A stretch of DNA of 64,000 bases from contig JALMLS010000548.1 of the NCBI GenBank assembly GCA_038496445.1, positions 124,001-188,000 of the forward strand, given 5' to 3'. Shown here piece by piece: positions 12,819-36,359 of this stretch (position 1 is the stretch's first letter; each line of letters begins with the position of its first letter). The DNA is from Trichosphaerium sp. ATCC 40318. Its lineage: Eukaryota > Protista > Tubulinea. Made by a program: the position numbers and the translations under genes. Under the pieces are notes generated by a model. It did not search any database. It saw nothing but the letters and a program-made list of their open reading frames with translations, and was not told the DNA's origin.

Positions 12819-13323
12819 ATAGAAAATAGTCACAAATACTAGGATGTTCTTTAACACATTTCTTCGTTACACAAGCACTAATTGCGAGGATTGTATGAAT
12901 GCCAGTGAGTGATTTGATTCCTTCATCTGTCACAGAAGTATGTGAAACATTTATTGTATGAACGCTTCTGAGTGCTCGTATGCCTTCATCTGTTACTGAT
13001 GTACCTGAAACATTAATATAGTGAACACCTTTGAGTGCAGTGATCCCTTTATCTGTCACAGCAGTATAAGAGACATTTATTGTATGAACACCCGAGAGTG
13101 CTTTAACACCTTCATCTGTCACATCTGTGCAATAGAGACATATAGTGTGGACACCTCTTAGCGCTTTGATACCTCTATCTGTTATTTAGGTGCTTGAAAG
13201 GTCTATCTCATAGATACCAGCAAGCGCTATGAGACTTTCATCAGTTATTAAAGTATTTTTAAGTTCAATTCTGTGAACTCCAGAAAGTGCTAACAATTCA
13301 TCATGAAGTTTTATGAAGATCTA
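12819..13323 (-). pseudogene. 3' segment of the disrupted F-box/LRR gene
   Basis: LRR units (xTDEGxKALxGVHTI) with one frameshift near 13300 and an in-frame TAA near 13187. It continues the 36360-36699 segment across the TA duplication (GVHTI|DLHKT). Confidence 0.85.
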
Positions 13324-13374
13324 CAGTACTAAAATAAAAAGAGGAAAAATAGAGGGAATCTCTACAAAAAATCA

Positions 13375-13885
13375 AGGGAATTTTAGACCTCCAATCCCGG
13401 GGTATTTCATCCTAAATAGACAAGGAAATTTCCTTAAAAATCCCTGATGTAATTCTCTCAAAAATCCTTGGTGTAATTTTAACAAAAATCTTTGATGTAA
13501 AACACTAAAAAACCTTATGAAATTTCGTCAAAAATCCTTAGTGTAACTCTCTCAAAAATCTCTGGGGCAATTACTTTAAAAATCCCTTAAGTAATTTCCT
13601 CAAAAATCCCAAAGTAATTTCCTCTAAAATCTCGAAGTAATTTCTTCAAAAATCCCTGGAGTAATTTCCTCAAAAATCCCCAGAGTAATTTTCTTAAAAA
13701 TCCCTGGAGTAATTTCCTCAAAAATCCCTGGAGTAATTTCTTAAAAAATCCCTGGAGTAATTTCCTCAAAAATCCCTGGAGTAATTTCTTAAAAAATCCC
13801 TGGAGTAATTTCCTCAAAAATCCCTGGAGTAATTTCCTCAAAAATCCTTGGAGTAATTTCCTCAAAAATCCTTGGAATAATTTTA
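13375..13885. repeat. Left subterminal tandem array, 24-bp unit GGAGTAATTTCCTCAAAAATCCCT
   Basis: About 11-12 near-perfect copies at 13590-13880, with degenerate copies toward the TIR. Confidence 0.9.
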
Positions 13886-13918
13886 TCCAAACCACGAAAA
13901 AAAAGTCTACTTTATTGG

Positions 13919-16363
13919 TTACAATTCAAAACAATAAGAATCACAAGCAAGGTTTACATAATCACTGTATACATCGTTTAAAGTTGCTAATTTTAAATGC
14001 ACTAAAAATAGTAAATAGCAGAGATGGTTTAAACACACGCACATAAAGTGTAAAATTGCAATACTTGTCCTTCTGTTTCTTTGATTTTAAGGTGTTCTAT
14101 GTAGTTCTTTAGCTGTTCGTGTTTACCCTGAATAGTGCTAACAGTGTCTTTAAAAATATTAATTCTACCGTCGTTGTATTTAGCAATAAGTTTTATGATT
14201 CCAATGCCAGTTCCTCCGTGTGTCGTACAATTTGATAATTGTATGTCATACACCACTTGAGAGTTTGGAATGGACAATTCACTTGTAATCAACTGTTTGC
14301 TGTCATAAAATAAATCAGACGTCGCTAACAATTGTTAATATTATAATTTTTAGAAAATTAAAAATCTAGAACATACCTACAAAAGCGTAATTGGCTTTGT
14401 GTTTAATGACAGCTGTCCAAAACCTGCGTAGTATAGATTTTATTAAATTGAAAAAAGTCAAATCGCGTACCATTTTTTGTTGATTCCAAGACCATCAAGA
14501 GAGGGTTTATTGCACAGTATAACAGTATTATTGTGATAAACTGGAATAAGTGTTATCCAAGATGTTGTGTCATCATGTTTCAAGGACTTAAGCATCATTA
14601 ATAGCTAGAAATTAATAATTACATTTTACACGTACATTTTTTGGAGGAGGAAAAGAACTATCATCAGACAATATGCCCTTGTATACTGTTCTTACAAAGC
14701 TGAACAAACAATTTGCAGTAAAAAGATAATCACTACCACAAAATAAAGGCAAAAAATCATCAAGTAATAAAGTTCTGTTTTCACAATCTCCATCAATGTA
14801 CACTTTGACATTTTTTGCTATTTCGAACTACAAAATAATGTTAACACAAAATTAAAGAGCAAAAACAAAAAATATACTGTTTGTCTAGAGTTGTCGTCAT
14901 CTCTTGCATCACCCGGAAATTGTAAAATATAGTTTTCACGATATTGAATATCCTTGAACTCAATTAAATGGTGAATGATATCATAGCGTACTGTTTCAAG
15001 TTGTGATACATTTTGTCTGAGAGCAGATTGTTGGAAAAGCGGTTGTTCATTTTCAAAGTTGACAGGTTGGTTTGCTCTGGTAGGGACATGACGTTGACTC
15101 AAGTTTCTGCGATTAATATTTTGTCGCGTAATTGTAGGTTGCGATTGTTGTTCATGTTGGCTTCTTAGTTCTACATATTGTTGTAAAGATTGTTGCTCAA
15201 ATGTTCTTATATTGGCCATGCGCTTTTGACGCCTTACTTTTGAAGCCTAATTACAATGATTGGTATTTTTAGTGACAAAATTTATACATACTTGACTTAA
15301 TTGTATTGACATAGGGTCAGGCAGAGAATAGTCATCGATCACGATAGGTTGTACAGAATTGGAAACACATTTGGGATGTGTAAAATCGGAAGTGTTGCTA
15401 ACAGTGAAGTAAGCAGTTGAATGACAGTATAAAATCAAGTAAACGCACAGTATGTCACATAATTTATCATTTTGTATTTTGTATAAATCGTATGCTTCAA
15501 TGTTAAGGACTTGATGTTCATTTTTGTTAGCATAGTCCTTCACTTTCTACAATGAAAAATTAAATGTGTTGTGTTAGAAAAAGATATTCGTACTTTATGA
15601 ATGTATTTGTACGCATCCAAATAAAACTGGTTTGATTGTTCAGAAAACCATTTCTCAAGCGTAATTTCAGCACAAGCTACCATTTTATGCGCTTAAAAAA
15701 AGGCATTAAAACAAAGAAATCTTAAAAGGCTTATATGTACTTAAACTGTCTATATTTTCAGAAACCATAGCTTGGCATTTCAAATATGCAATAAGTTGCT
15801 TGTTGAAAGGCTTTAAAACTCCTTTACAGTATTTTTCCAACACAAGTGCACATTTGGTGATATCGTCATCTGAAGTTATGCTGGTGTATGATTGTTGGAT
15901 ATCACCTATCATGGCGTCGGAATGATTTATTAAGGCATATTTTCCAATATACCAGAGGTATTTTCTTCCCATTGCTCTTTTCCAAACCTGATTTAAATAT
16001 GTAAGTATGGCGTGAAAAAAGACAATAGAAACATCAAACGCACAGCAACTTTACTTTTGTTTTGAAGGGCAAACTTTAAACTTTGTACATCATGATTCAG
16101 GCTGTTTATCGTTGTTTTCATCTCAGATAGCGTATCATTTTGTTTGTTTAATACAAACAAAATTTGTTTAAAAGCGACTAAGCTTGTGTAAGGTAATAAT
16201 AAAACACTGTAAAGTAATAACCAGTACCATTACAAAACTCTAAGACCAATTCGCTATCAATTAAATCTATATTATCAAAATTTATAGCAGTAGGATTTTC
16301 TTGTGGACTGTCCACTCTACGACTGTCCACTCTACGTCTTTTTCTGTACGGCGTCGAAGACAT
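13919..16363 (-). CDS. Transposon ORF2 of the outer element: N-terminal NLS/coiled coil and C-terminal Ulp1-like (probably inactive) domain, multi-exon
   Basis: Spliced translation MSSTPYRKRRR...KRAMGRKYLW...AHKMVACAE...DDFLPLFCGSDYLFT...W|FWTAVI...HGGTGIGIIK; homologous to 26203-28255. Confidence 0.7.
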
Positions 16364-16396
16364 GAACAGTAATTTATTGATGTTTACAAATTATGA

Positions 16397-19300
16397 CTAT
16401 TGAATTAGCATTTTTTGTTGTTTCAAGTGTTGCAGTCTAGTTCTTTCGCTGTCACCTACTATTTCTTCAATTGTTTGGGGATTCATGCTGTTGTAGGCTT
16501 TGAGCGGACAAAATGCAAATATTTGGGTGGTGAAGCCTTTTAAATAGGTCACACCTCTATAATGTACAAACACATTAGCTACTGAGTCATTTTCTAATGT
16601 TAACAATGCGCACCTTGTGAAACAACACACCCACAATCCTATATATTCACTTTCAGCATTGTTGATTATTCTTAGCACACGAACAGGGTTACGATAATGG
16701 AAGCATAGTTGTAAACGAAATTGTTGTCTTTGACTCGTTACAGCAGGTATTGCAGCAACCAAATTCCTATTTTCATGTACTCCTCCAATACCAGTTGTGG
16801 TAAAGTATTGAAGAGAGCCAACAGTAGACATAGCACTGAGCACTCTAATGCTACAGTTTAAGTTAACTCTAAGAGAATCCATAGGAAATTGTTCATCTAT
16901 TGTGTCGCTGGCGAACGTTATTGTACTAAATGAAATAAATTTAAAGTAAAAAGAACATGATAGTGATACGTGTTTTGTCTAAACCCTCTTGTTGGCAAAT
17001 CACAGTCTGGAATCTTTTGGTTCATTGTGTGTCCAACAAATGGTCCATAGTAACCCGTTTTGGGACAGTTGTCGTCATCATTTTTATGCGTAAAATAATC
17101 AGTCTCTAACATTTTTTTGCAATTAATGCAATAAATGACACTGTTATTTTGTATCATCTCAGTTCGCATGAGTGTACACCACTCCTTGAACTTCCTTGTA
17201 GTTTGTAAATGCTTACTAAACAAAGTATTCATATTATTGTGATGCTTTACTGCTTATACTGTTGTACCTCTGTTGGTTTTTCTTTCTTTTTTTTGTTGCA
17301 GTTTTTTTGACACCAAACGACCTCGCCACTGAGTCTTTGAGTGTTGCGTTCGATATATGTGATGCCAGTGGTTGTAATGCAATGTATGCTGCCTTTTTCT
17401 TTGATTCTTGTTTAAATAGAGCCTTGCTAAAAAGTCTGACAGTCCATATTTTTTTGCCTTTTACTCTTGAAATAAACGCCCTAACTCAAGAATTAACATT
17501 ATGATGTAAACCAAGTATTTTACCTGTGTTTTATGGTTTTGTCTTTTTGTTGATACTTTGGTGGCGTGTATACAATGCTGTTTGGAGTAGACAATATGTG
17601 GACGCTTTTAACAGCTTTAGCACCATTAAATTTAGTGTATTGTAGTGTAAAGTCTTTAAAAGACTTGTCATTTGGGTGTACAAGCTCATCAGGTTTACCA
17701 GGTTCGAAAAAATCGTATGCAGAAAGCACAGCAACCTACAAAAACAAATTAATACAATCACAATAACATATAAATTTACCTCTTTATCAATCCCGTATGC
17801 TTTGCTTTTGTCCTGATGATACACAAGGCCAACCCTAGTTTTATTTGTGGTACATACCTCCAAGGTTAGGCCTGGGTACACATGCACCGATACACACAAA
17901 CCAAATTTGTAACGTTGGCTTGTTTCTATTTTGTCTAAATCGTATCCTTTTTTGATGACGGGATGGTTCAAAGCTAGAAATAAAAGAGGTATCACTCCTA
18001 AAGGAAACTGATTATTTCCGTTTTCTGAATTATACACTCTGTCCTTTCTAAAAAGGTTGCCTGAAAATATGTGCCCTCCCTCTATTGGATGTACAGCAGA
18101 AACAATCCTAAATATAGAGTTAATAACACAAGTAAAAAACCCAAAATAGTCAACCTATTAGTGAGATTGTTGTGGCCTCTTGATGTTTCTATAGCCATAG
18201 CATCCATTCCAACATCATTTATAAGAAGTCTCGTGCTTGAATTCCAGACATTTTTGATGTGTAGTAACGGAGACAAGCTGTCATCGTCATCATCCAGGGT
18301 GTACAATGCATTTTGAGCATTACCACTAAATATGTAATTAATTAGCACTAACAACACGAATAATATGTACCAAAGGAAAAAGCGTGACAGTTTTTTCTTA
18401 AGATCCTTTGTACAATTGTAAAGCTTTTCAACTATGGCTGTCATAGGACAACTTTGTTGTAAAGCTAAAGCAAAATAAAACTTTAACACACGCTTAAGGT
18501 CATCTTTTGAACGCGAAATCGCACTACAACCAATTAAATCAACAGACATAACATATGTTGACATACTAGCGTTCTTTGCGAATATCAAAAAACCTATCAT
18601 GATAGTCGACTTTGTTGGCGTGCATGTCTTCTTCATTGCCATTGTTGTCTAAATTAGCAATGTTAATCTAATCAAGCACAAAAACATACACCATTGAAGA
18701 TGTTGAAAATATTGTACATACCACTGCGATTACTGGAAGACTGTACACCATCGTCAAAGTCGGAGACATCACCTTTACCACTGGTGCTGTCTTTGTTGAT
18801 GTTGATGCTGAAAGAACGTATGCCATCGTCATTCTCATCACTGGAGACGTCATCCTCATCACTGAAGACGTCATCCTCATCACTGGAGACGTTATCCTCA
18901 TCATTGGAGCTGTCTTTGTCAAAGTCAATGTAAAAAACCATAAGCCATTGTTGACATTGATGCGTACCATCTTTATCACTGGTGCTGTCTTTGTTGGCGT
19001 CAATGTTGGAAGGACTTATACCATCGTTGTCATTGGAGATGTCATTCTCATCACTGGAGCTGTTTTTGTTGGCGTCAATGTTGGAAGAACTTATACCATC
19101 ATTGTCATTGGAGACGTCATTCTCATCACTGGAGCTGTCTTTGTCAAAGTCAGTGTAAAAACCATAAGCCATTGTTGAAGTTGGTGTGTACCATCTTTAT
19201 CACTGGTGCTGTCTTTGTTGGCGTCAATGTTGGAAGGACTTATACCATCGTTGTCATTGGAGATGTCATTCTCATCACTGGAGCTGTTTTTGTTGGCGTC

Positions 19301-20008
19301 AATGTTGGAAGAACTTATACCATCGTTGTCATTGGAGACGTCATTCTCATCACTGGAGCTGTCTTTGTCAAAGTCAGTGTAAAAAACCATAAGCCATTGT
19401 TGATGTTGATGCGTACCATCTTTATCACTGGTGTCTTTGTTGGCGTCAATGTTGGAAGAACTTATACCATCGTTGTCATTGGAGACGTCATTCTCATCAC
19501 TGGAGCTGTCTTTGTCAAAGTCAATGGCAGAAAAGAACATGTCATTGATAAAGATGAAGGCATAATATGTACCATTGGTTCTATTAAAGTGGTTACCAAG
19601 TGGCTTTGTTCGAAATGGTGATGGTCCTAGTAAGCTTTAGTTAAAATAAAAGTGTAATAAAAGTATAGCAGTACTGTATGCGTTGTTTAAATGCCTATCA
19701 AACAAGTCTTTGATATTTGTTCGTTTTTCAATAAATTCAATGTCTTCATGACAATAGTCATATATACAAGCAGACCTATTAATATTGACTGAGATTTTAC
19801 ACAACTATAAGATATAAGACGTACTTTTTAGTTTTTTCTTTAAAATAAACGACTCCATATTTATCGTATGTCGGTTCTGCATAATGTATAACCTTCACCT
19901 CCGTATGGTACATTTTGTTTAATGCACTTTGTAGGGTTGCAAATCGTTTTGATTTTTGTTCTCTCTTTCTTCTTTTATGTGACTTAGTTGTCACACAAAC
20001 AGGGTGAG
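16397..20008 (-). CDS. Cargo gene: acidic repeat region, AlkB-like 2OG-Fe(II) dioxygenase, CxxC..H..C motif and SRA/YDG-like domain (5' end uncertain)
   Basis: Manual splicing gives a continuous frame: NRIVSAVHPIEGGHIFSG...CVSVHVYPG...GLVYHQD...VAVLS...NSIVYTPPKYQ...KHRAF...KKIWTVR (AlkB-like), then YYGPFVG...FTTTGIGG...NPVRVLR...EYIGLW (SRA-like). Confidence 0.7.
18780..19520 (-). repeat. Coding tandem repeats (about 224-bp period) encoding D/S/N-rich units, each carrying a putative intron
   Basis: Three copies of DFDKDSSSDEND...SSNIDANK with putative GT-AG introns at 18914-18967, 19139-19191 and 19363-19416. Confidence 0.8.
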
Positions 20009-20019
20009 CTAATCATTAG

Positions 20020-20340
20020 TCAGTGTTTTAAATTCATTTAGTGTTGAACAAAAAAAAACCCTGTCTACAAAGCGTATTAAATATCGCGGTGGCCACGAAA
20101 GCCGATGAACGCGTAAGAGCAGGTTGTAAGCCGTTTTAAATTCAATTAGGGTTGAACAAAAAAAAACCCTGTCTACAAGGCGTATTAAATATCGCGGTGG
20201 CCACAAAAGCCTATGAACACGCGTAAAAGCAGGTTGTAAAGCTGTTTTAAATTTGAACATATTAAAAACCGCGTCAACAAAGCGTATTAAATACGACAAA
20301 GCTACGAAAGCCAATGAACGCGTAAAAACAGGGTTTAAAG
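20020..20340. repeat. Tandem repeat, about 109-bp unit, 2.5-3 copies
   Basis: gttgaacaaaaaaaaaccctgtctacaa..cgtattaaatatcgcggtggccac at about 20043 and 20151, with a degenerate copy at about 20252. Confidence 0.85.
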
Positions 20341-20649
20341 CAAATTGGCCAAAAAATATCCAAAATAGCGTTTAACACAACGTATACGCATTATACTTTT
20401 AAAAAGCACGATGAACTGCCAAAAACAGGCGATTAAAGTGCATTTCATTGTAAAACAGGTAAAAATTATAAAACCTTCCAAATACTATCGCTAGATGTAT
20501 CAATGTGTGTTTTGAATGACTTTGGGGAAAAAAGAAGTAAAATAGTAGCTTATACACGTTTAGGGTATACAAGGCTACAAAGGTACGTACGTTTACGTTT
20601 CCTCTCCATTTGATGTATTGTATTGTATTAAATGGGTAAAGTCCAGTTC

Positions 20650-22300
20650 AAGTCAATCTTGTGCTGAACTCTTCTCCGAAGGCCGATAGACGGCTCGCAT
20701 GTACGTCACGGCGGCAATAGCCGCTGTGCATCTTTTCTTAATCCTCCAAAAGAGGATTTTAACATGCAAGAAGATAGTTCAGATAGTAACCCATCAGAGT
20801 CCTTCAAAGCTCGCTGAGGCGGCTCCAGGACATTGAATATTAGATTTACATGATTGGCGTGCCAGCAAAACGTCGCATCAGGTGAAGCATTTTCTTCATT
20901 CTCATCGACATCAACCGTTCCTAGAAACGCCAATAAGTGTACACTCAAGCGGAAACATAGGTATGAAGTTTTTTGAAGTGAGCAAACTATTGAGTGTAGA
21001 GCTTTGCTAAAGGTTTTTCCATGAACGTTATTTGTTATTGCTGCTACAAGAAGGAAAAAGCTTGATGTATACCGCTCTTTGCGAGATCAAGCAACAATAT
21101 CTTACCATCCTTCCAGGTTGCCATAAAAGTTATTCTTTTGCGTAAGGTCTTTGGTTCTATTGGTGTTGTCATTGTAACGCTTGAAAATTATGAAAAATCT
21201 TACTCACTGGCTTCACTTGAATCAGAGTCGTCAAAGGCAAGCAAATCATCATTGTCCCCCTCCATATCATCAAGGCCGTCATCTTGTGATACATACCCTG
21301 ACAAAAAATGTACTTACATTTGTCTATGTAGGTACCTACGTAAAAATGAATCTTTACCATAAATGGTGTCAAAAAGGTGCAAATGTATAAAATTACATTT
21401 GGGCCATTAACTCCATTTTACGTACTTTCAAAGATAAGATACAGTCACCTCTTGTTGAGTTGCTTCGAGTGTCAGATGTATGTCTAGCGCCTAGGTAAAA
21501 AGATTACAAATCAACTGCTGTTGATACGATGACAAATTGGTAATGAGTTAGCACAATTGGTGATCAACGGCCTTGTGAAACTGTGGCACAATTTCGTCAA
21601 CTGTTATAAGCATACCTGACATACCAAAGAAACATATTAATTGCTTCAATTCAGCTGTTCTAAACAGCATAGCAAACACTAAAACTGAAAGCTTCTTAAA
21701 CCGCTTTTTTGTTCTAAAGACGCTGTAAATAATGTGTACAATGAAAGTACAAGCACTGTACCTATTCATTTGTCACTGTGACACACGCCGTCTGTGTTGA
21801 GCTGAAATCCATTTGCAGACTTTGCTTGGGAAGTATTAAACGATTTTTGACCCATTGTAAAGTGAAATTGTTGGAAATAACTTAGAGTGGACGCAACAAA
21901 ATAGCGTTTGGCGTCATCCTATAGCAAAGTTGGTATGTACGGACTTTCTACACAATGGAATTACCTTTGGTAGCCGCTGTTGGAGCTGTAGAGATCGTGT
22001 AAGGTACCCCAACGTGAGTAACACAACCTTAAGATAAAGGTCATCTATACCGTTTTCCGTTGGCGTGAGGGGTGTCATCCCACAACAGGTGGAAAATCAA
22101 GCTCCTACAATGCATTTGAGTTTTATTAGTCCAAACAAATACGATAGTACATCCAGTTAAATCAAGCATCTGTGACGTGTTGTTCAAATACATTCTCAGC
22201 AATCTTGACAGCTAAAACCAACGTTGACGAATTATAGCTGTAATTTCATGTCAAGTACGCAATGAGCCTTTATGTACCTATTATTACCAAAAGTAGTTAA
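20650..22300 (-). pseudogene. Degenerate multi-exon gene fragment inside the outer element
   Basis: Series of GT...AG intron-like segments and short coding-like pieces (DDGLDDMEGDNDDLLAFDDSDSS; GTVDVDENEENASP) with stops; no family recognised. Confidence 0.35.
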
Positions 22301-22694
22301 AAGCTGTAGTGCAACAGTACAGCCGTAACGTTGGGCGATGAAAGCACACTCAACAACACAATACATACAACGTGTACAAGTGACCATTCAAAACTAAATA
22401 GGCTCCCACATCACACATCAAATTGACACCAAAGATGCCACAAAAAGCAAGAAAAAACGATCGACAACAATTAAAATACTTTTGCAATTCAATAAATTCT
22501 TTCATTGCGATAACACTCACTATACAACATAACTAAACATTACACAATAGTACATTATTTTTTAATAGGTTTTGACATGTCAGTGGTTAGGGTTACAAAG
22601 AAAACCTAATACTAGTTTAGTTATAACTTACAAATTAGGGTTCAGCATTTGAATACTGTGAAATGTTGAGTTCGTACCGTAAGGACAAAGGAAG

Positions 22695-23005
22695 CGCGAC
22701 TAAAACAAGGTAGAGAAATTGTGTTCCCGCCTAAATTGATAAGTAACAGGTAAAAAAAGCGCAAATAGTTGCAAACGTACGTATCATAATCTCCAGTAAG
22801 CGCACAACTAAAACAAGGTTGAGAAATTGTGTTCCCGCCTAAATTGATAAGTAACAGGTAAAAAAAGCGCAAATAGTTGCAAACGTACGTATCATAATCT
22901 CCAATAAAAGCGGGCAACTAAAATAGGGTTGAGAGGTTGTTTAACCGCCTAAATTGATAAGAACCTGCAAACGATAGCGTATTTAGTTGTGAACGTACGT
23001 ATTTG
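22695..23005. repeat. Tandem repeat, about 108-110-bp unit, about 3 copies
   Basis: taaaacaagg..gagaaattgtgttcccgcctaaattgataagtaacagg..caaacgtacgtat at 22701 and 22809, with a degenerate copy at 22919. Confidence 0.85.
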
Positions 23006-25006
23006 CGTAGAAGATCACATAAATATCACGGTAAACAAACCTCAATGACAACAACAACTGAGGCACACAAGACAAAAGGAGGCCAATCCTTTTCGGGTCA
23101 GAGCTGTTGTTATCGAGTGTGGCGCGTTTTTTTATTGTTTTTTTATTGTCAACATTTTTCAAACACATTTATTGTTTGCGGAGCACTGTGTACCTGGTGT
23201 TTAAACCGCTCAGGCGTTGGTATTGCGGGGTAGGAATTGTGGAGCTAGGATTACATTAAGAACACTGAGCTTAAGAGGTAACTGAACGGGCACAATGCAA
23301 TCAGGCGTGGTAGTGACAAATACAAAGTGGAATTTTATCATTGCACTAACTTTTTGGGCTCCAAGGTACAATGAGCATCACATCACTGACACAACATGCC
23401 CGAATGACGCTATGGAGGGTAAAAAAAAATAAATCACCAACATTTGAGCATTGCGTACTATTACTATGCCCACACGCGTAGATTAGCCGTGTGTGTGCGC
23501 CTAGCGTTGTTTTTGTAACACTAAACGCTGTTGGAACAAAAAACTCCCAAACTGAGCCTAAACGCACGTACAGTCATCATAAAGCGCTTTAGGTATTGTA
23601 CATACCGTTTAATGGGCACAGGTAACACTTTGGGGCAATTGACGCGTTTTATGGGATAATTTGCCAAAAATGAAAATGAAGGTCCAGCACTTTTGAAACA
23701 GTGCTTTTTATAGCAATTAATGATGATTTGAGCGCTTTTGGGTAGGACAAAAAAGTAAGGATAGCACTAAGTCACGTTTTGCCTATATACGGTAAGTAGA
23801 ACACCTTCCTAATTTGCTCTCAAACGATGTAAAACTGCTGTTATTCCCCAATGTAGCAACGCAGACTAATGAGCGCTAGTGCTCAGAGTAAAATTTAAAC
23901 ACTTTAGGTGTAATATGGCACATTACGCTCTGAAACGTAATAGCGCTAGTTCAAGGTACTAAAGCGCTTACATAATCAATCACATGTTTTAGAGTAATTA
24001 CACAGAGACCACAGTTCGAGGGTCATAAGTATAATATTGGTCCTAACTTTCTACCAAATAAAAGAAACAAGTCAGCACCAACATCAACTTCCACCAAGAG
24101 ACACACAGTGACATCCATCAACAAAAACTCTCCAAAAAGCAGGAAGATGGACCTTGAGCTAGATGGTAAGTGTAATCATATAATTTTCATTTTTCAGACT
24201 TGGACCCTACAGTAATCAATCTAATGTGGACACAGAGACCCCAAAACACCCCTGTCTAAAAGGATGTGGACACTGTCATAAGGAATGCACATTTCAAAGC
24301 ACAGACTGTAACAGTGAGGTTGTGATCCTCCGTTCTAAAGGGATCATGATCATACCAGAAAGGCTGACCAAGTTTGCAGATTGCTGTAACACATTTACGT
24401 TTGTATAATAAAACGAAGGCTCTGTGAGATCGCATGGCCTCCATTGCAGATATTATTGATTAGCTTGTTTATTGCCTTTTGGTGATCCTGCACACCTTTC
24501 TCCTTCGTTGCTCGCACTGTGCAAGTGTTGTTTGCTGAACCCACAGGCGCTAAAAATCCATCCTCTTCTGCTGCCTCAAAGAAGCATAGAACAAAGTCCC
24601 TGACTTTAAAACTTTCATTTCACTTCCGTTACAGGTGTGTTATATGAGTCATTGTTATGTGACTGTGTCATCTGGTATTCTATCAGATGTGACATCTGGT
24701 GTCTATTGGCATTGCCATATGGGATGAATACTTGTGCTGGCACTTTGTTGTTCCTCAAGCTTTGTAATTGTGCTTCATCACCCACAACGCCTGCACTTGT
24801 TTTATGAGTGTGTTGATCATTGTCTTTGTTGACACAGACAAATGTGTATGTTTTGAAGTCACACTTTCTGTAATCTCAACACTAGTTTGTTGAACCATAA
24901 CAATGAGAAAGTGAAATTTGTTTAGTTTTCTTTTGCGAAAAATTCTATCAGTAAAAAAATATGTTTTCAAAACAGAACAAATTTATTATAACAGATAATA
25001 TTACAG

Positions 25007-25745
25007 ATGACCTCAGAGGTCATTTCATGCCATGTGTGTAAAAAACGTATACGGAAATCCAATCTGGCCAGACATTTACGAACTAGTTATTGCCAAAGTT
25101 TAAAGTACAGTCAATCTTGTAGTGCGCCACAGGTAATGCTTTTAATAGCAATTGATTATTTTTAAATGTTTTACAAAGGAAAACAACACTATAAATACCA
25201 CCAACTCATCTAATTATGCCTACAATACATTGACAAACAGACATTCGCTAGTTCAAAATGAAATGTACACTTATACTCAACCAAACCGTTACATTCAACC
25301 ATACCACGATATAAATATTTCACATCGCCAATACACCATGCGACCTCAATACACCTCACAATTAGAGCATTTTCCATTCGAAAATACAAAACAAATACAA
25401 CTTAACCTACAAAACAACTTACAAACTCAAATGACATCTATTTATGAGGCACCAATAGTTGACAAGATATTGTACCTAATTAGAAAACTACAATTGGAGC
25501 AACAGCTTTCAGATGAAAATGTGAAATTGTGGTTGCAATTTTACAATACGACAGCTATGCTATTACCTTCAAATAACTCCAACAACCTCTTTTCAACTAA
25601 GCTTAGAACAACATTGGCCAAACAAATGTTTACTAAGGTACTTGCTCCTACAATTAATATTTTTATTGAGACTTTATAGTACACTGCAAAGCTCGCAATG
25701 AAAAAAATTAGTGTCAAAAGAAAAAACAAAAGACCTTTGACAATA
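25007..25745 (+). CDS. Outer-element CMC transposase, 5' part (interrupted by the nested element)
   Basis: MTSEVISCHVCKKRIRKSNLARHLRT (Zn finger) and DKILYLIRKLQLEQQLSDENVKLW; ends at KRPLTI at the TA duplication. Confidence 0.8.
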
Positions 25746-26202
25746 CAGTACCAATTCATAGCTGTTATTTTTGCTGTAAATCTTAGCTATTTTTGATATA
25801 CTTCTTGTAAAGAAATAAACGGGAAAACTCCCACTTTTTTCTTGGAGAATTAAGAGCGAAAAATGAGCAACCACAAAATTTTTACCTAATAATTTGTTGA
25901 TACTTTTCACAGTAAATACGTCTTAACTACACATGAAATATCTACTATTTAGTAGCCAATTTTACTATGCAATCAGCGTGAAATAAATTATAATTCAAAC
26001 TCAAATTGTGCCCTTTTATTTTTGAATTACTTGTTAATTAACTAAACTATAGTGAGTATTTCTGTATTAAATAAGGTCAAATTTGCACTAAGTAATCCTG
26101 AATTACCAAAGAAATACTTGGTATTTTCAACAGAAATCAGCGAAAATTACACATGATAAAAAACCAGTAGTTTTTATTGGCACTACAGCCGCTTTTACTA
26201 CA

Positions 26203-28255
26203 TCAGTTTGTTGCACCAAATACAAAATGGTCAGGGTTAGATTGCGCTTGATAACACAGTTGTTGCATTGTGACCATCCCTTGTTGCACTACAAAAAAAC
26301 AGTCAACGCAATAATAAAACATAAAATCACTTGCCTTTTGCATACTCTTCCTTAAAAGGAACATGGTCATCAGCAGTTACAAGGCGAGCAAAACATTCAG
26401 CATCAAGGTGTTGGGCCTTGCCTGTGCATCTGTACTCCGCCTTAGGAGTTTGAGATTCATCATGAAACCACTTTTGTTTTAAAGTTTTGATCAATCCTAT
26501 GCCAGTTCCACCAGGAGTGTGAATGGCCGACATACAAATAGTGTTAGCTATGTCAATCTCATTTATTCCAAAGTGATCAGCAGCCACCACACGAACATCT
26601 GCAATAAGTCTTTTGTGTGCTAAAAACAAGGTGAATCAACAATAGTACAAAATGAAAAAACCAAAGCAATTTCAATCCGCCATACCCAAAAAAGTAAAAG
26701 ATTCATTGTGATAAACAAATGCTGTCCAATACCTATTTCAACATTAACAAAACAAAGGGTATTGCAACATACCATGGCATCGTAACATCACAATTGAGCA
26801 GTGTAGGATGTTTACAAATGTATACTTCGTTTTGTTCACCATAACACACTGGAACAGGCAACACCAATGGCATGGTAGATCCAGAACCTGCTGTCTTTGA
26901 CAAGTAAGAAACAAATTGTAGAAGAAAAAGTTCAAAGGTTGGAGTAATACGCACCAGAGTTCCAGCCAAGATCTGCTGTTTTGTTGCCACTGCATACTTT
27001 TCAGTCCGCAAAAATGGAAGAAGGGCATCGACAGTGAAGAGAAAGTCTTCAGCACAAAGTAGAGGTAAAAAATGTTTCATAGCCACTTTTTCTTGTGTTG
27101 GATCTGTGGTTACTACAAATTCTGTGTTTGCTGGTATCGAACTCTAACACAGATTACTACACTGTAATTAAATAAAAAAAACCAAACGTACTTGAGCGTC
27201 ATCTAACATTGAAACATCTTCCGTATCCTTTTTTTCACATGGCTGTTTAAGTGCTCCAACAAACACTCCCAAACCGAATTCATCATCTGGCTTTTGTTCT
27301 TTTTGCTTTGGTTGTATTGGTGTTTCTTCAAATTCATTTTGATATTTCGTCACCTGAGGATGTCTGTAATCCAAGTCATCTATTACTGGCTTCAAAGAGG
27401 GGTGATGGGACACCAAGGCGCTGTATTCTGCCAAAGCGACTGCCACAGTAGGTTTTTTACCATTGAGCAATGTTTTAGAATTTTTAACCAATTCAATCCT
27501 CTACAATAAAACGCAAAATAAGCAAGTTGCAAACTCAATTTAAACACTAACATAAAGAAAGTACTCATACGCAGCTCCATAATGCATTTGGTTAGAGTAT
27601 ATGTTGGCCATAGTCTTCTCAGCAATTGCTACACACTTGTGGGCTTTAAATGAAACAAATTAGCAGTTGTTACTAAAAAAACTAAGTATTCGCACCCACT
27701 GTAACCATGTCCATTACTGTAGCACGGTAAGTGCTTCCACAAGCATACTTTATCAATTGATTCACTGGACCATATGTATCTTTAAAGACTCTGGTTGTTC
27801 TGAAATGATCCATAGCACGTAAGTCACTGTAAGTAACATCCCTTCCAGTATGTTTCTGAAAAACGTCATTTATAAGTTTGAAAGCCTGGTTTCTTTGTTT
27901 TAGAACATCTACAAACTCAGCTGGCATCCACAAAAAATTGTAAATCAAGGCTCGTTTAACTTCCTATGTGTCATTAGTCAACCAACGAAAGCAAAGAATG
28001 GAAAGAAAATACCAAGGTCTGTTGTTGAGCCATCTTTTCACGCTGTGCTTTAATCTCTTCACTTAGTTTGGTAACAGTTGTTTTGAATTGAAAGAACTCT
28101 GCTTTGAGTTGCTTTAAACTGTTATCAAACGCATTAATAGTTGCAATCATTTCTTTTTGGTTTTTAAGTATAATAACAGACGCTTTGTGTAGCTGTTGAA
28201 AGTAAGGGATCATATCCTCCTCTGTTAGCTGTTTCTTTGTAGGCGGCTGAGACAT
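26203..28255 (-). CDS. Transposon ORF2 of the nested element (homolog of 13919-16363), multi-exon
   Basis: MSQPPTKK coiled coil...KRALIYNFLW...AHKCVAIAE...HFLPLLCAEDFLFT...W|YWTAFV...PGGTGIGLIK; intron positions are shared with the outer ORF2. Confidence 0.75.
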
Positions 28256-29160
28256 GTTGCCTGAGTGGTTGTACAGAAAATATTGAGTAACACGACCACG
28301 TGGATTGGTATTCTTAGTATTATAAGAATATTTCAGAAGTTACAAAATTGGAATTGTAATCGCCTTGAAATTAATTAGCGTGTATGTAAATTGGATTTTG
28401 TAGCATACCACATCTGACCAAGCGAAAAGTTACAAATTCCGTAAACCCACGTGATAAAAAACCAAAACCAAAATTTATTTACATATTTGATACCTGGTGG
28501 CGTTTACAAAGCTATGGTAGTGGCGTTATACTGGCTTGAATTTTTTTGTATGATTTTTCACGCTATAATCCTGTTGATGCCATGAGAGCGCTATTGGCAG
28601 CGTAGGTAGACGCTATTTGTAGCGTTAGTAAATTTTACACGTATCTGTACAATACAGTTGGTTTTTCATCACGTAAAACAACGTTGAAGAGTGTTTGAGT
28701 CTAATCTTACCATACAGTTGCTTTTGGCATCGTAACTTTTCTTTTAGCTACCGAATGACTTTTGTGGCTTGAACGTACCATGTACAGTGCCTAGGTATTG
28801 TGATCTTTCTTGTCATGCCGGGTAATGGTTAGACGGTGAGCTTACATTGAAAATTTTGTTATCACTTAAATTACATAAGCTGTACTGCAAACGCCAAGAA
28901 AGAGCTTACCGTGATAACAAGCAGGTCAAGTTAATGCAATCCTAAGAATTCCTTAAAAAATACACGTGTAGTTTTATTAAGAACAATGTACTGCACTGTT
29001 TTTAGCCAAATACATTTGCGTTCTGTAGAAACCATTGTGGCAGCATCAAACAACCTTAAGGTTCTTTGAAATGTATTCAAAAAAATACCTCTGTGAAAGC
29101 AGCCGTGGCAGTACAGCGCAGGTACATCCCAAAAGCGCTTTGATAAATAATGGTGCCTAG

Positions 29161-30048
29161 ATACTATCACTGACCAGCTTACCTCTCGAATTACAACTGT
29201 ATACAATGGATTTAGATTTTGGAGTATATAAAATCTGGCCACTGTTAAACAGAGCAGCCTCCTTTTTCCGCTTCAACAAATCCATTGAAAAGAGTGGAGT
29301 ATGGAAGTCACAGTTTAAGCGTTACTACTTCAAAGATGGACTTCAACATGGTGAGTGCAAAGACTTTTATCCAGACGGGAGGGTACAATACATTGTAAAA
29401 TATCATAAAGGATGTGTTTTGAGCGCTTTGCGGAGAAGTTATTATGAAGGAGGTGAAGCCATGGTGGTGGAGTTCTTTGAAGAACAAAAAAATCCCCTTG
29501 TACAAGACTTTGTAGATTTGAAGAATTTGTATGAAGAAGTCACCTGCACTTGTGGGTACGACTTAGCCACAAAAAGTGACATCGTTTATGTAGCACTTAT
29601 GCATCTTTTCTCTGGCAATGCACGTGATGTCATTGAATACCATATCCCAAGCAAAGACGTTTTCACCAAAGAAAAAATAGATGACATGTTTCTTTCAAAT
29701 GTATTGGCCAATAACATACCCAAAGCTTGCTTTGGTTCTATGAAAACTAGCTATAGATGCATTCCGAAAGATTCTAATTACAAAGAAGGTTTGATAATGA
29801 CGTGGAACAGCCAACAAGCCTTAACACACATTCGTCAGTACAAAAATGACCAACCACATGGTTCATCACTTTCCTTTCACAGCAATGGTGCTGTTTGCCA
29901 TAGATGCCATCTCAGTAATGGTGAACTGCATGGAGATTGCAGTGAGTACTATGAGAACGGTCAAGTGAAAATGCAAAGTAGATACGTGAATGGTAAATTA
30001 ATTGGTAAACTCACACTCTGGTTGAAAGATGGCGCTTTAAAGAACTAA
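29161..30048 (+). CDS. F-box plus MORN-variant (MORN_2/YwqK-like) repeat protein, cargo of the nested element; 5' exon uncertain
   Basis: LTSLPLELQLYTM F-box-like motif in frame just upstream of the 29206 ORF; repeats of HGxxxxYYENGQxKxxxxYxNG. Confidence 0.7.
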   Translation: MLSLTSLPLELQLYTMDLDFGVYKIWPLLNRAASFFRFNKSIEKSGVWKSQFKRYYFKDGLQHGECKDFYPDGRVQYIVKYHKGCVLSALRRSYYEGGEAMVVEFFEEQKNPLVQDFVDLKNLYEEVTCTCGYDLATKSDIVYVALMHLFSGNARDVIEYHIPSKDVFTKEKIDDMFLSNVLANNIPKACFGSMKTSYRCIPKDSNYKEGLIMTWNSQQALTHIRQYKNDQPHGSSLSFHSNGAVCHRCHLSNGELHGDCSEYYENGQVKMQSRYVNGKLIGKLTLWLKDGALKN

Positions 30049-30199
30049 ACCTTGTACCTAATAAAGAAAACACGTGTTTTTGAATTTAAAGTCAAAGCTG
30101 GTTTTCAAATCGTTTGTTTTGACTTTAGCAGTGTAGATGCTTGGAACTTTTACACCATGTGCGTTTCTTCCGTTTTGTAAACTGTTTCATTTATTTTTA

Positions 30200-31653
30200 T
30201 GCCAAGCAACTCAAAGGCACCTTGCACACTCGACAGGGAAAACTAGCTGCATGGTTCTTTATAGCTGTAGTACATAAATAAAACCATAAGTACAAAATCA
30301 AAGAATGAGCTATGTACACAGCAGCTTGCAAGTTCCAGGCATATCTCCAACTATTTTTTCAAGCCTAGCATACACATTGAACGTCTATCAAATATGATAT
30401 AGTTTTAGCATAGGCTTGTTGTAAATTTTGGCGCACCTTATCCAATTTAGAACAATAACACTTTATGCCATAGTGCAATGCATTCAAGTCTTTTACTACA
30501 TAATCTACAGCATCTTCAATCATGATCTTGGATGGTAAAACCATCAGAGGCATCACACCTTGCATAGTGCCACTGTTGGGCATGTTCCATATGACCATGT
30601 ACATGGGTCCCACATTGTCTTTTTTGTCATAAGTAAAGTCATCGTGGCATAAATAAACTACAAAAAGAAAGTCAGTAATTGCCCATCTAGTTGTCACGCT
30701 CACCTGCCAGCCGAATGTTTTCACTTTTTTTTTCCACATCTTCATACAACTTGTAGTAGCGTTCTGCAGTGTCTGGGCCCTCTATGATCCTGATCCTTTG
30801 TGTCTTTCCTTTCAATTCCATTTTGGAGACATAGTGAGGATACTTAGATGTGTCATTGATGGCATCTCTGTCTGTCAGGTTGTATACCAACAGTCTGATA
30901 TATTGTGACGGCGGAATAAACATCAATTTCTTGGTTTTGGTCACATCCACTCTGACAGACATTTCTTTCAGTTCAAGTGAAGGTGTAAACTGCAAGTGAG
31001 AAGAAATATTAATTTTACAATAACTGTAAGTTGTTACGTACAGCTTTGAAGGCGGCCTTGGCTCTTTTTGGTGTCAAAAGATCATAGTTGAATTGCTTTT
31101 TGCCACTTTTGTCCATCAGTTGAGCTGTTGATCTTATAAAATCCAGCCATATTCCAACGTTATCATCTGACAATTGATTATCTAGCTGCAGTTTTCTAAC
31201 AAGACACAACACCTTTTCTTCAGGGGTTCCATTTTTTATTGAGCGCCACATAACCCTTTCACTTATCGCATGCTCCAGTTTGGGTTCTGTGGTATTGTAA
31301 AATGGAGACTTCGATGGTAATCTCTCAGGCAACATTGGCACAGGTTCAACTAGTGAAGCGTCACACAATCTAGAAGGATATTTGAATGGTTGAGGTTTGT
31401 CCAGGGGTTTGAGTGCTAGCTTTGCATTCGGTTTTGGTTTTGAGTAGCACGTTTTCTCCTTTTCCGTGATAAAAGTATCTTGATTTGTGCGTTGTTGGCG
31501 TTTAAAAGCTGGGATTAAATGCTTGTAGTATCCGCCATTGCTGGTATAACCACCAGACTTGTGTAGTGCTGTCTTGACATGTTTAGCGTAATGTTTTTTG
31601 AGTATTCTGGATCCACAGCGTAAACACGTGATGCGAGGGTCTTTTTTGCGCAT
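30200..31653 (-). CDS. Nested-element CMC transposase, 5' half (in an inverted segment)
   Basis: MRKKDPRITCLRC..HVKTALH Zn finger, EKVLCLVRKLQLDNQLSDDN, YLCHDDFTY..GPMYMVIWNMPN, VGDMPG and FPCRVC. Confidence 0.8.
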
Positions 31654-31696
31654 CTTAATGAGTTTTTTAATACCTAAACATAGTGTGCATAGTGGA

Positions 31697-33467
31697 GACG
31701 TCAAGGTTTGTCAGCTCAGAACTGCCAAAAAAGTCTTGGATTTGAAAGGTAATAGTGGACAAACAAATGAGGAGAAGTTGAAAGAGCTTTGTTTAAGAGA
31801 TTGGGTATGCTTTTTTTGGGTTTTTTTTACTAACATTGCCACAGAGTCCATTTTTAACGCTTCCTAACTTTGACATTCATCAACATTCTCCCTTTTGCCC
31901 TTTTCACAATGTGCTGTTGGGTGTTTCCAAACCCATAATCAGTGCAACATTGGATTGGTTGCAAAGCCATAAGGGACGAAACTGCAGGAACTTGGTGAAC
32001 AACCAAATGCAATGGTACAAGCGTCAAAAGCATGTACATCTTGTAAAGTAAGTTCTTGTGTTTATCTTTGCATGGTTTTTTCCTTATACATGTGTAGAAC
32101 TAAAGAGTTGTGGGACAGCCACGGTGCACTCAACACAGAGCGCCAATGGGATGGCAATGACTTTAGGTCATTTTTACAGATGGCTTTGTTTGTTTTTAAG
32201 CCCTTAGTTTCTGATAAGATTATGGGGGTGTGGTAAGTGCTTTTCTAATTGTTTCATTGTAATTTAAATAATTTGTATCAGGAGGACCTTTTTGGAGTAT
32301 GTGGCATTGATGTCTAGGGACTTTTTACAGTATGACAGGTTGAATGACATCACTGTCCAAGCCAAGCGATTGTTGAAAGAGGTGGCAGCATGTTTGCCAG
32401 GTGCAGCACTGTTTTTTTGCTATTTGGTGACACTCACTTAGAAGCCAACATCTCCACTCCAAATTGTCATGCGTTGCTTCACCATGAACAGCATGTGAGA
32501 ATGTTCGGCATGCCCAAACATTACAGGTATGGGCAATGCTGGTGATCTTATTTAATTTTGTTTTAGTACCTACAGTTGTGAATCTAGGCACATAAAAGTG
32601 AGAAATTGGAAGCATTCCACCAATGGATTGCACAAGGAGAAGTGCGTAGATTGAAACAATAGTTTTTTGGTGACTTTGACAATGACAATTGTTGTTTATT
32701 TTTTTATTACAGTGACATCATGGTGCGAGAGATGTTCATGTATGCCTCCTGTGCTTTAAAAGACTTGAGTGTTGTTAAAGTTCATGTTGAAGCCCGAAAG
32801 GCATTCACTGTGTCAGTGCCAGCATTTTGCAACATTCCACAGGCACAATGGACTTTGCGTAAGTGAAGTTTTTTTCCTGTAATTACTTTTTACACAAAGT
32901 CTCCTTGTTGTAGATAATGCAACCTCAATGGAACTGAGCACAGAGTTGAGAGCAGCTTTGATGAGGGATGTTTGCAAAGAACAATATGGTGATTTGGAAT
33001 CTTGTTCTGTGGTGGCCTACAAAAAAGCAAAATGTGCTGCTAGAGAAATGACGTTGTCTACCAAGAACAACACAAGCTTTAAAAGTTGGAGGCCGATTCA
33101 TGGTGAAACCAGGAGCAATTGCATTTATTTAGAAACCACCCACATAGTGATGATGAGTGGTAATGTTTTTATTTTTGGCAGGTATTGTGGTTATTTTATG
33201 TGATTGTTATTGACACAAATGCATGTAGGCTATTTGAGCTTTACAATCCACAAAAGAAATATGATGAAGCTACTAATTTGGTGGCGTGCGTGTTTTTAAA
33301 TATGTGCTGAATATCTTTTTGTTGATCTCAAAACAAGGTTGCAAAGTGTAGAAGGCTTGGCATGTGTACCTTTGAGCATGGTGTACAAGCAAGCCTGCTT
33401 AATACCAGATCCTGTTGTTTCTGGTATGTTTTTGGACAACTACTATCAATATGCAATACCTAATTAA
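31697..33467 (+). CDS. Nested-element CMC transposase, 3' half
   Basis: DVKVCQLRT...HSPFCPFHNVLLGVSK...WDGNDFRSFLQ...CHALLHHE...FGMP...SCESRH...NYYQYAIPN*. Confidence 0.8.
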
Positions 33468-33669
33468 TATTGTAATTGTGCGGGTTGTGTGTTGAAGCAC
33501 TTTTTTTACAATAAACAATGCACTTCTTTTTCTTTATTATTTCATTGGTAAATTTTTTTTATTTTAAGTGGCCGGCACTGAAATAGTAGCGAAATATTTA
33601 AAAACAGTGAAATACGAATGAAATCATTATTATTTATCTTTTATTTCTTTGAAGTGAATTGGTACTGTA

Positions 33670-36155
33670 CCATTTATCCCTCCTTCTGAATATGTCAGAC
33701 TCCTTATGTATCACCTGACAGATAGAAATGCCATCAATGACACTTCAAAATATCCTCATTATGTTTCTAAGGTTGATGTGAATGGAGATGTACAACAATC
33801 CCACATTTTTTCTGGTCCCGAAACTGGAATTCGATACAAACAAATGTATTCCGATGTCAGTAACTTATCAAGCAATGTTAAATTAGCAGGTATGTTTTAT
33901 TGCCATCACAGTTTTATTGTTGTTTAATACCTGTTTTGTAGCTTATCTATGCCATGATGACTTCACTTACGACAGAAAAGAAAGTTTAGGACCAATGTAT
34001 CTTGTAATATGGAACATGCCAAATAGTGACGAAATGCAAGGAAAAATGACTTTAATGGTGTTACCCACTGATGTCATTATGGTTGATGCAATGAAATACA
34101 TTACAGATGATTTGGCATCACTTTACAATGGAATAGATTTGTATTGTCCCATATTGAAACAAGTACTTTATTCATTATTTTTTTCTCCCGAGTTTTAAGT
34201 TGTTTTTAGACTTTTACCGTCTATCTCAGATTGGAAAAACTCTTAGGAGATATGCCTGGAACATGTAAGGTTGTTTGTACGTTGTTTTATAGTTACAAGC
34301 CAGATTGATAACATAATGTTTAGCTATAAAATCATATCAAGCCAATCTTCCATGTAGAGTTTGTAAATTAACCAAAGAAGCAATGGCAGAATTAAAAGAA
34401 TGTCAAACTCTGCGAACAACAAACAAAGCATTAAAATTGCATGCAATTGATTCATCTCCATTTCATTTACATAATTTGTGTTTAAAAGCTTGGGTACGAA
34501 TCGACAAATTTTTAAACTAATAATATTAGTCTCCATTTCTATTTTTGCCTGATTTTGACATTTTCCAACACACTCCTTTTTGTCCGTTTCACAACATCAT
34601 TTTGGGAGTTGCAAAACAAGTTATGATAGGCACTTTTGAGCTTTTAGAAACGCATCAAGATGTGAAAATTATTGCAAGAGATAAAATCAAAAAGGGAGTG
34701 GAGTGGTATAAGCGGCAAAAACATGTTGTTGTCACAAAGTGGGTTTTCTTGTTATCATCGCTTTTTATTTACTTTTATTAAGAATAAAACCAATTTGGGA
34801 CTCCAAAGGACAGTGTACTGTTTTAAAAAAATGGGATGGAACTGATGTTAGATCGTTTTTACAAATGGCATTATTTGTTTTTAAACCTCTTTGTTCTGAA
34901 AAAGTTTTAAAAACGTGGTACAAATAATGTACTCTGTTTATAGTTTACTGATTTTATTTTAGGCAAGTGCTTTTAGGCTATGTTTGTTTAATGTCAAAAG
35001 AATCTTTAAAAGCAGAGCGTTTGCCACAAGTTACAACAGAAGCTAAACGTTTAAAAAAAAAAATTGGAAAATATTTACCAAGTACTTTTTCGCTTTGTTC
35101 TTCTCTAAAAACACTATTTTCACACTATTTTTAGATGTCAACACTAAAACTCCAAACTTCCATGCTATACTTCATCACGAACAAGCCATCAGATTGTTTG
35201 GTATGCCAAAATATTACAGGTAAAAATTGTCTTGATAAAAAGCAATTACTAACGGTACTAGCACCTACAGTTGCGAGTCCAAACATAAAAAAATCAAAAA
35301 TTGGAAACATAGCACCAAAGGATGTAAAAAAATTGAGTACTAGAATCCATAATGGTCTTTAAACACTAATATATATCAGTGACATTATGATCAGAGAACG
35401 AGACTCAATTTCGTCATATTTATCTGGTGACTTCCAAACTCATCTTTCGCAATTATCCACTAAAACAAAAAACCAAAGTAAACGTATTACTTACTTAGCT
35501 CGACAAGTACACAACAATTTAGAAGCTGAGTGGACCTTACGTGAGTGCATCTAAACATTTTAATTGCTTATCTATTTGAAATTAGATGGAAAAAAAAAAG
35601 TACAAGAACTATCAACTCAAATGATAAATGTGTTGATTCGTGACACATCTGTGCAATCGTTTCAAAACACTGATTATCCAATTGCTTTTTACTCATCTGC
35701 AAAGTGTATAGATAGAGATGTATCAATTTACACCTCACCTCGTAAAAACACATGTTTTAAAACGTGGCGACTTAACTTTGATATTGAAAGTAGAAGTGAT
35801 TGTATTTATCTTGAAACAACTCACATTATTCAACTAAACAACGATGATGAAATTTATGTTTTTGGAAGGTATTAAATGACATAAACTATAACAATGAATT
35901 ACAATCTAAGTATACTAGGTTGTACACCTTGCTTAATCCTCACGAAAGATATGATTCAGCTACTAATCTGGTTTCGTGCGTTTTATTGATATATTGTTTT
36001 CAAGCTCATGTTTATTTTACAATAGCTTAATTCGACAAAATGACTTGGCTTGTGTGCCTTTGTTTATGGTGTTTAAACTCGCTTGTATCATTTCAGATCC
36101 TATTGAAAATGACAAATATTTGGTTAACTACTATCAACAAGCAATACCAAATTAA
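33670..36155 (+). CDS. Outer-element CMC transposase, 3' part
   Basis: CMC signature in order: D (HDDF), D (GDMPG), CxxC (CRVC), PFHNIILGVAK, HxxxH (FHAILHHE), E (SCESKH); ends NYYQQAIPN*. Confidence 0.85.
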
Positions 36156-36169
36156 CGTCAACAATAATA

Positions 36170-36340
36170 AATTGCAAGAGATTTTTCATAAAATTTCATG
36201 TTTCAAAAGAGATTTTTTCAAAAATTTCATAGTCAATGAGATTTTTTCAAAAATTACACTCTTTGTCAAAGAAAATTTTTTAGAGAATCTCCAATATATC
36301 ACGTTTTTTGGGTAATTTGAGGAAATCTCTATAAAATTCC
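36170..36340. repeat. Right subterminal repeats (inverted relatives of the left 24-mer)
   Basis: gagatttttt(c)aaaaattt units and ggtaatttgaggaaat resemble the reverse complement of the left array. Confidence 0.6.
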
Positions 36341-36359
36341 CATTTTCATTTTAGTACTG

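Follow-up and report, generated by a model that had tools for sequence, protein, structure and literature searches.

The seven-exon gene and its carrier element

The window, i.e. the whole stretch of 64,000 nucleotides of Trichosphaerium sp. ATCC 40318 DNA analysed here (contig JALMLS010000548.1, positions 124,001 to 188,000), harbors a DNA transposon of 23 kb with a second, related transposon nested inside it, and within the outer element a minus-strand gene that is the subject of this work. The firm outcome of the analysis is a defined, cargo-carrying element of the CMC type with its nested sister, together with an orphan gene that is missed by open reading frame (ORF) tracks and by current protein databases. 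Coordinates of the elements and of the parts of the gene are compiled in Table 1.

The gene is intact and comprises seven exons and roughly 830 codons. Removal of five introns from the minus strand, each of which starts with GT, ends with AG, measures 44-58 nt and is 71-82% A+T, joins six exons into a frame of 2001 nt with a sole, terminal stop codon (16397-16399), corresponding to 666 codons counted from the ATG at 18642. The first-pass annotation, made from the sequence alone, had proposed such a continuous frame behind short GT-AG introns and had remarked that the ORF track hides it; both hold, the introns breaking the frame into fragments, and every motif it quoted was found in its place in the translation of the spliced frame. 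Through a further short intron, exon A is joined without any frame shift to the Asp/Ser-rich ORF that lies upstream (19172-18690), and the model extended by this acidic exon has seven exons, six GT-AG introns (41-58 nt) and 829 codons. Across that length, some 59 stop codons (~59) would be expected from the local base composition; because the spliced frame is open (P ~2e-27) and its junctions are in frame, the gene must be regarded as real and intact. Its start codon and 5' end are uncertain, since repeats further upstream shift the frame. The tandem repeats at 18672-19621 consist of DFDKDSSSDENDVSNDNDGISSSNIDANK-like acidic units that are open in two minus-strand frames, with a period apparently not divisible by three.

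The boundaries of the outer element are well defined. It ends in CAGTAC...GTACTG and is bordered by a TA target-site duplication (13322-13323 and 36360-36361); removing it in silico, together with one TA, rebuilds a GVHTI|DL leucine-rich-repeat (LRR) coding unit, and F-box/LRR ORFs flank it on both sides, such that it is a TA-duplicating insertion that interrupts an F-box/LRR gene of the host. The outer and the nested element alike carry the 5'-CA...TG-3' terminal inverted repeats (TIRs) and the 2-5 bp target duplication that characterize CMC/CMCT transposons according to section 3.1.6 of PMC12730594. No Pfam family matched the transposase exons. The nearest protein-language-model neighbours of the transposase core ORF from the sister copy were Transposase_21 (EnSpm/CACTA), RAG1 RNase H and Plavaka (0.87-0.92; recognition 2505), and EnSpm/CACTA, RAG1-related and Plavaka transposases have been grouped as CMCT, with ESTA elements being EnSpm-like and having TA duplications and CA...TG ends (PMC12730594). 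The TIRs, the TA duplication, the rebuilt empty site and the EnSpm/RAG1/Plavaka-like neighbours thus bear out the initial proposal of a gene borne by a CMC transposon, and the assignment of the carrier as a CACTA/EnSpm-like (CMCT, 'ESTA-like') cut-and-paste element is supported.

A tblastx map of the two elements revealed that the outer transposase gene has been cut in two by the nested sister, which separates its 5' part (~25022-25640) from the 3' part, and that both elements have in common the transposase and, close to the left end, a 'gene 2'. In the nested sister the map showed no counterpart of 16397-19172, which identifies the gene as dispensable cargo of the outer element. Compared with the outer copy, the nested transposase has its 5' part (31632-30200, minus strand) turned around, opposite in direction to the 3' part (31845-33471, plus strand), and the nested element seems to be internally rearranged. 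An ORF with MORN repeats (29206-30048, plus strand) also lies inside it.

Table 1. Carrier elements and gene parts in the window; motifs are given as read in the translation.
Feature	Positions	Strand	Remarks
Outer DNA transposon	13324..36359		23,036 bp; termini CAGTACTAAAAT...ATTTTAGTACTG
Nested sister element	25746..33667		CAGTACCAATTCA termini, TA duplication; inserted into outer transposase gene
Outer transposase gene, 3' two-thirds	33672..36159	+	tblastx map
Upstream exon (probable)	18690..19172	-	acidic Asp/Ser-rich repeats; in-frame join; start codon uncertain
Intron	18689-18649	-	41 nt, GTATGT...TTTAG; stop codons in each reading frame (search for additional short introns)
Exon A	18155..18648	-	ATG at 18642; YVMSVDLIGC weakly like AlkB GYTMSVAMTNC
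Candidate in-frame intron in exon A	18370-18326	-	45 nt, multiple of three
Intron	18154-18108	-	47 nt
Exon B	17780..18107	-	GGHIFSG (18079-18059), CVSVHVYPG, HQD (17818-17810) as proposed iron-binding His-x-Asp
Intron	17779-17736	-	44 nt
Exon C	17524..17735	-	VAVLS, NSIVYTPPKYQQ, proposed distal His (17528-17526)
Intron	17523-17466	-	58 nt; alternative in-frame acceptor at 17481
Exon D	17268..17465	-	KKIWTVR (17455-17435), basic stretch KKRKKN (17293-17276); alternative start at 17480 would add AFISR
Intron	17267-17216	-	52 nt
Exon E	16970..17215	-	Cys-x2-Cys...His...Cys (17130-17065), YYGPFVG (17052-17032)
Intron	16969-16926	-	44 nt
Exon F with stop codon	16397..16925	-	TGIGG (16795-16781), PVRVLR (16687-16670), YIGLW (16645-16631)
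Candidate in-frame intron in exon F	16613-16557 or 16604-16557	-	57 or 48 nt

By the database searches made, the predicted gene product is an orphan protein. A phmmer search with exon F against 1.84 billion representative proteins returned only two repeat-protein artefacts, exons B and F had no relatives in metagenome or viral contigs, and no paralogue of the gene occurs within the window. Searches of PDB sequences with exons B, C and F gave unrelated matches only, with none at all for exon C, which likewise matched no Pfam family. A Pfam match of exon E to DUF7830 (E 0.11) was at noise level, and the neighbours of exons B and F in the ESM Atlas (a nucleotidyl-transferase and an epimerase) were of low recognition and judged meaningless. 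This lack of homologues in the protein, metagenome and viral searches, the absence of the gene from the sister element and the fact that the outer transposase is already broken by the nested insertion would all suit a fragment captured from the host or a passenger in decay, in either case without function for the element, whose frame would still be open only owing to the young age of this copy. Against such a passenger stands the integrity of all 829 codons and of the six splice junctions, each precisely in frame, and it is considered quite improbable.

Comparison with the AlkB family

Early on it was suggested in the first-pass annotation that the spliced frame encodes an AlkB/ALKBH2-3-like dioxygenase fused to an SRA-like domain. 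In its developed form, this proposal describes a divergent AlkB-type Fe(II)/2-oxoglutarate (2OG) demethylase joined to a divergent SRA-like reader, which would strip host 5-methylcytosine (5mC) or 6-methyladenine (6mA) from the copies of the element and let them escape silencing; on balance, it is unlikely. The protein does present motifs in AlkB order, namely YVMSV....C, R-x13-FSG, C..N, HQDK, VAVLS, a distal His and K.W.VR, but profile comparisons did not recognize an AlkB enzyme in them. No Pfam or NCBIfam family matched exons B-D, and 2OG-FeII_Oxy_2 (PF13532), for which a Pfam and profile search had been recommended at the outset, matched no exon, although an exon-wise scan is weak here, with the putative domain split over three exons and filters that drop matches with P above ~1e-5. 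AlkB profiles were therefore assembled from enterobacterial AlkBs, then with 80 loci from GTDB (to 58% identity) and finally with six divergent plasmid AlkBs (to 33% identity); no viral AlkB seed sequence was found for this purpose. The resulting bacterial hidden Markov models of 12, 81, 87 and 120 sequences, searched against the spliced protein, all scored it at -0.9 to 0 bits, and the only stretch to align was GLVYHQDKS in exon B, opposite the invariant HQDK(DE).

The sensitivity of the smallest of these models is best appreciated from a positive control on PDB sequences. The 12-sequence profile found ALKBH1 with 108 bits, ALKBH2 with 34, ALKBH8 with 33.5, ALKBH5 with 28, ALKBH3 with 22-26 and Ofd2 from S. 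pombe with 14 bits, such that every canonical ALKBH scored at least 22 bits, whereas the spliced protein was given -0.9 bits. Since the control recovers both ALKBH2 and ALKBH3, an 'ALKBH2/3-like' enzyme would have shown up, and this part of the early assignment is not supported. FTO and TET, on the other hand, were missed among the PDB sequences by the same profile, and a jelly-roll as distant as these could therefore escape it.

The latter point is of importance for a further reading, in which the central domain would be a dioxygenase of another clade (TET/JBP-like or new) and its resemblance to AlkB would be generic to the fold. The HxD...H...R pattern is indeed general to the superfamily, and all transposon-borne dioxygenases described so far belong to TET/JBP, some of them being detectable by structure alone (PMC12730594, sections 3.2.3 and 3.4). 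However, no exon had a Pfam match to Tet_JBP (PF12851), a search of low power on a split domain. The FSG and HQDK motifs, furthermore, are AlkB-like rather than TET-like, as we assume, and a dioxygenase of another clade appears the most improbable of the alternatives.

Along these lines, alignment of profile to profile brought little more. The hhalign probability against AlkB was 3.8% for the core; on the full protein it was 1.4% and 0.3%, with two short collinear matches (YVMSV....C and C..N......HQDK). A profile-wide (glocal) alignment of the jelly-roll core to AlkB gave z = 1.15 versus shuffles, and a higher z for a longer AlkB profile was rejected, its register being wrong and the HxD misplaced. 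The AlkB profile score of ~0 bits was equalled or beaten by 134 of 3000 shuffles and, of 91 other ORFs in the window, by 3, such that the AlkB motif series put forward at the outset is not confirmed to exceed chance. One low-complexity ORF (53042-53389, minus strand) even reached 11.6 bits (nominal E 9e-6, one target), a spurious hit with its two segments out of order; this false positive indicates that, for random ORFs in A+T-rich DNA such as this, HMMER reports nominal E-values that are too optimistic.

The individual residues give a mixed picture. The AlkB alignment shows no variation at N120, R204, L207, T208 and R210, and almost none at Y122. In KKIWTVR, compared with the AlkB motif R-x-N-L-T-x-R, the first, 2OG-binding arginine is replaced by lysine, and the threonine and the last arginine are kept; the N-x-Y position reads TTNKT or VHVY, depending on the alignment, and is thus not clearly conserved. 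A downstream histidine is present (KHRV), but no alignment method set it on AlkB His187. Taken together, the protein is, as judged from its translation, not recognisable as an AlkB family member, and that its central region forms a 2OG jelly-roll of some kind, very divergent, is doubtful.

The C-terminal region and SAD/SRA domains

For exon F the sole Pfam match was SAD_SRA (PF02182), with 14.9 bits and E 0.022, residues 39-98 being aligned to profile positions 58-121. Although this agrees with the demethylase-plus-reader proposal, the family has a cut-off of 30.7 bits, and exon-sized ORFs of the window draw unrelated Pfam matches at similar E-values (NCH2 0.012, RNA_pol_Rpb2_3 0.016, Flavi_propep 0.021 and CpG_bind_C 0.022), which places the match at the noise level. 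SRA profiles were constructed from SRA-HNH genes of viral contigs, retrieved by the degenerate pattern GDxhhYTGxGG, and then enlarged by 80 metagenome loci. Profiles of 7-9 sequences scored the protein at -1.8 bits; with the profile of 85 sequences exon F obtained 2.6 bits and was aligned from TGIGG to PVRVLR. In comparison, the seven-sequence phage/bacterial profile assigned 130-149 bits to UHRF1, UHRF2 and SUVH4/5/6/9, and 130-358 bits over the canonical SAD/SRA domains as a whole, versus -1.8 bits for this protein.

The canonical domains (UHRF1, SUVH4/5/6/9 and bacterial SRA-HNH proteins such as TagI) share with exon F the elements TGxGG, PVRV(I/L)R, Y.GL(Y/W) and GF, in like order and spacing. 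What is lost is the pocket. The SRA alignment is invariant at G70, Y71, D73, D74, D76, G78, D79, Y83, T84, G85, G87 and G88, and both the pocket motif GGYxDDxD and the tyrosine of YTG are invariant from phage to human; in exon F the equivalent of GGYxDDxD...YTGxGG reads SAMSTVG...QYFTTTGIGG, with only T-G-x-G-G kept, which counts against an SRA-like reader. Excising the candidate in-frame intron of exon F did not lift the SRA score, and an AlphaFold2 model of exon F alone, computed with no alignment, was uninterpretable (mean predicted local distance difference test 31.6, predicted template modelling score 0.23). The protein would not qualify as a recognisable canonical SAD/SRA family member by these comparisons; exon F appears to be at best a strongly degenerate SRA-like domain, and an SRA-like C-terminus in the form of a degenerate barrel is conceivable, with the balance leaning against it.

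Role of the cargo and published parallels

The preferred explanation, held tentatively and at slightly less than even strength, is that of an intact orphan cargo gene in a CMC-type transposon, whose product would be a nuclear DNA- or chromatin-binding accessory factor and neither a recognisable AlkB nor a canonical SRA protein. The seven-exon gene represents lineage-specific cargo of the 23-kb element, which has inserted in a host F-box/LRR gene and whose transposase gene was later split by the nested sister. The product may be pictured as a fast-evolving nuclear protein with an acidic N-terminal tail, a basic stretch resembling a nuclear localization signal and a Cys2-His-Cys zinc-binding motif, and it would most likely serve the element as an accessory factor that binds DNA or chromatin. 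A nuclear, nucleic-acid-binding protein is suggested because the basic stretch and the Cys2-His-Cys motif are present in the translation.

Several points weigh against an accessory factor of this kind. First of all, the DNA-binding role is inferred from just a short zinc motif and a basic patch. The HQDK of exon B is identical to the invariant iron-binding motif of AlkB, and there is the second weak collinear match, YVMSV....C opposite GYTMSV....C. The SRA score rose from -1.8 to 2.6 bits on enlarging the profile from 9 to 85 sequences; 11 of 3000 shuffles and none of 91 other ORFs attained the latter value, placing exon F at the top of 92 window ORFs, and a profile-wide SRA alignment orders IRVLS, TGIGG, FRLQLC, PVRVLR, YIGLW and KGF correctly (z = 2.3-2.6). 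Finally, AlkB enzymes fused to divergent SAD/SRA domains (PMC4738411) and TA-duplicating transposons with dioxygenases (PMC12730594) have both been published. That SRA-order motifs follow the AlkB series, with an empirical p of ~0.004, speaks for a reader fused to a demethylase; the SRA and AlkB p-values are, however, not a priori ones, because the hypothesis was picked from the same sequence. The SRA-like signal in exon F may be taken as real but small, and suggestive: of the original description as SRA-like this small signal stands, but a Pfam score of 14.9 bits under a 30.7-bit cut-off, far from the 130-149 bits of canonical SRA domains, does not carry an assignment to the family.

In this context one should recall that both halves of the initial idea have precedents. 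Iyer, Zhang and Aravind (2016, PMC4738411) described fungal enzymes of the AlkBH3 clade fused to SAD/SRA, proposed the fusions of AlkB with divergent SAD/SRA domains to be readers/erasers of N6-methyladenine (m6A), and noted that the fused SRA version is devoid of the usual features of the 5mC pocket. The proposed domain pair, AlkB-like plus a divergent SRA-like region, is the same as here; by the published description, however, the fungal fusions are recognisable AlkB proteins encoded by host genes, in contrast to the present transposon-borne protein with ~0 bits. Kojima (2025, PMC12730594) reported TET/JBP dioxygenases as cargo of many lineages of DNA transposons, among them ESTA, which would presumably evade silencing by methylation in this way; the first-pass annotation had likewise stated that related DNA transposons carry TET/JBP oxidases. 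The fungal TET/JBP transposons, again including ESTA, are likewise large CMCT cut-and-paste elements with CA...TG termini, a TA duplication and an extra intron-bearing gene, the cargo of which has been proposed to counter methylation-based silencing (PMC12730594). The cargo described here, on the other hand, has no TET/JBP similarity detectable by exon-wise Pfam scans and is a putative dioxygenase at most, and its host is apparently neither a rust nor a mushroom nor a truffle.

For the present gene an anti-silencing role is pure inference, and the full combination of reader and eraser is unlikely, at best as probable as the divergent AlkB-SRA protein itself. If it were true, the idea of transposon-borne demethylases, documented until now for fungal TET/JBP enzymes alone, would extend to the AlkB lineage and to another branch of the eukaryotes, and with the gene a natural fusion of reader and eraser could be studied; the new part would lie in the presence of an AlkB-type enzyme on a non-fungal transposon. 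Transposons with TET/JBP and KDZ genes were reportedly treated by Iyer et al. in PNAS in 2014 as well. A CACTA-like family with its own AlkB-type (not TET) demethylase and a remodelled SRA-like reader, serving anti-silencing independently of the fungal TET transposons, is if anything a shade less likely still.

Returning to the accessory factor, the closest analogy is with the TnpA-type accessory proteins of CACTA/EnSpm elements, likened here by description only: a second nuclear protein other than the transposase, in an element with subterminal short repeats. In CACTA elements, subterminal repeat arrays serve as binding sites for the accessory protein. For a role of the TnpA kind, 'gene 2', common to both sister elements, is a better candidate than the cargo gene. 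Subterminal arrays of short repeats (AAAAATCyyt...GTAAtt-like units) occur at both ends of the outer element (13380-13900 and 36060-36320), one of them giving rise to a spurious ORF of 102 residues with LQGFLRKL repeats (13587-13895). Just upstream of the gene, the palindrome CAGTACTG (19669-19676) resembles two element termini joined head to head; it may be meaningless, ~0.35 such octamers being expected by chance per 23 kb.

The surroundings of the transposon consist of a cluster of genes for F-box proteins with RNI-like LRRs (7478-8551, plus strand; 12799-13122 and 36351-37711, both minus strand), one member of which is split by the 23-kb element; the host is poorly sampled, the best database relative of an intact F-box/LRR gene of the window being a marine protist transcript with only 33% identity. 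Just outside the element lies a piggyBac-type transposase ORF (11310-12422, plus strand; DDE_Tnp_1_7, E 8.6e-48), surrounded by imperfect inverted repeats of 43 nt (10713-10755 and 12757-12799) that may mark the ends of its own element. Two ORFs at 55802-56319 (plus strand) resemble exons of a Ras/Rab-type small GTPase, with the motifs LVANKADL and FEVSAKE, and probably belong to an ordinary host gene.

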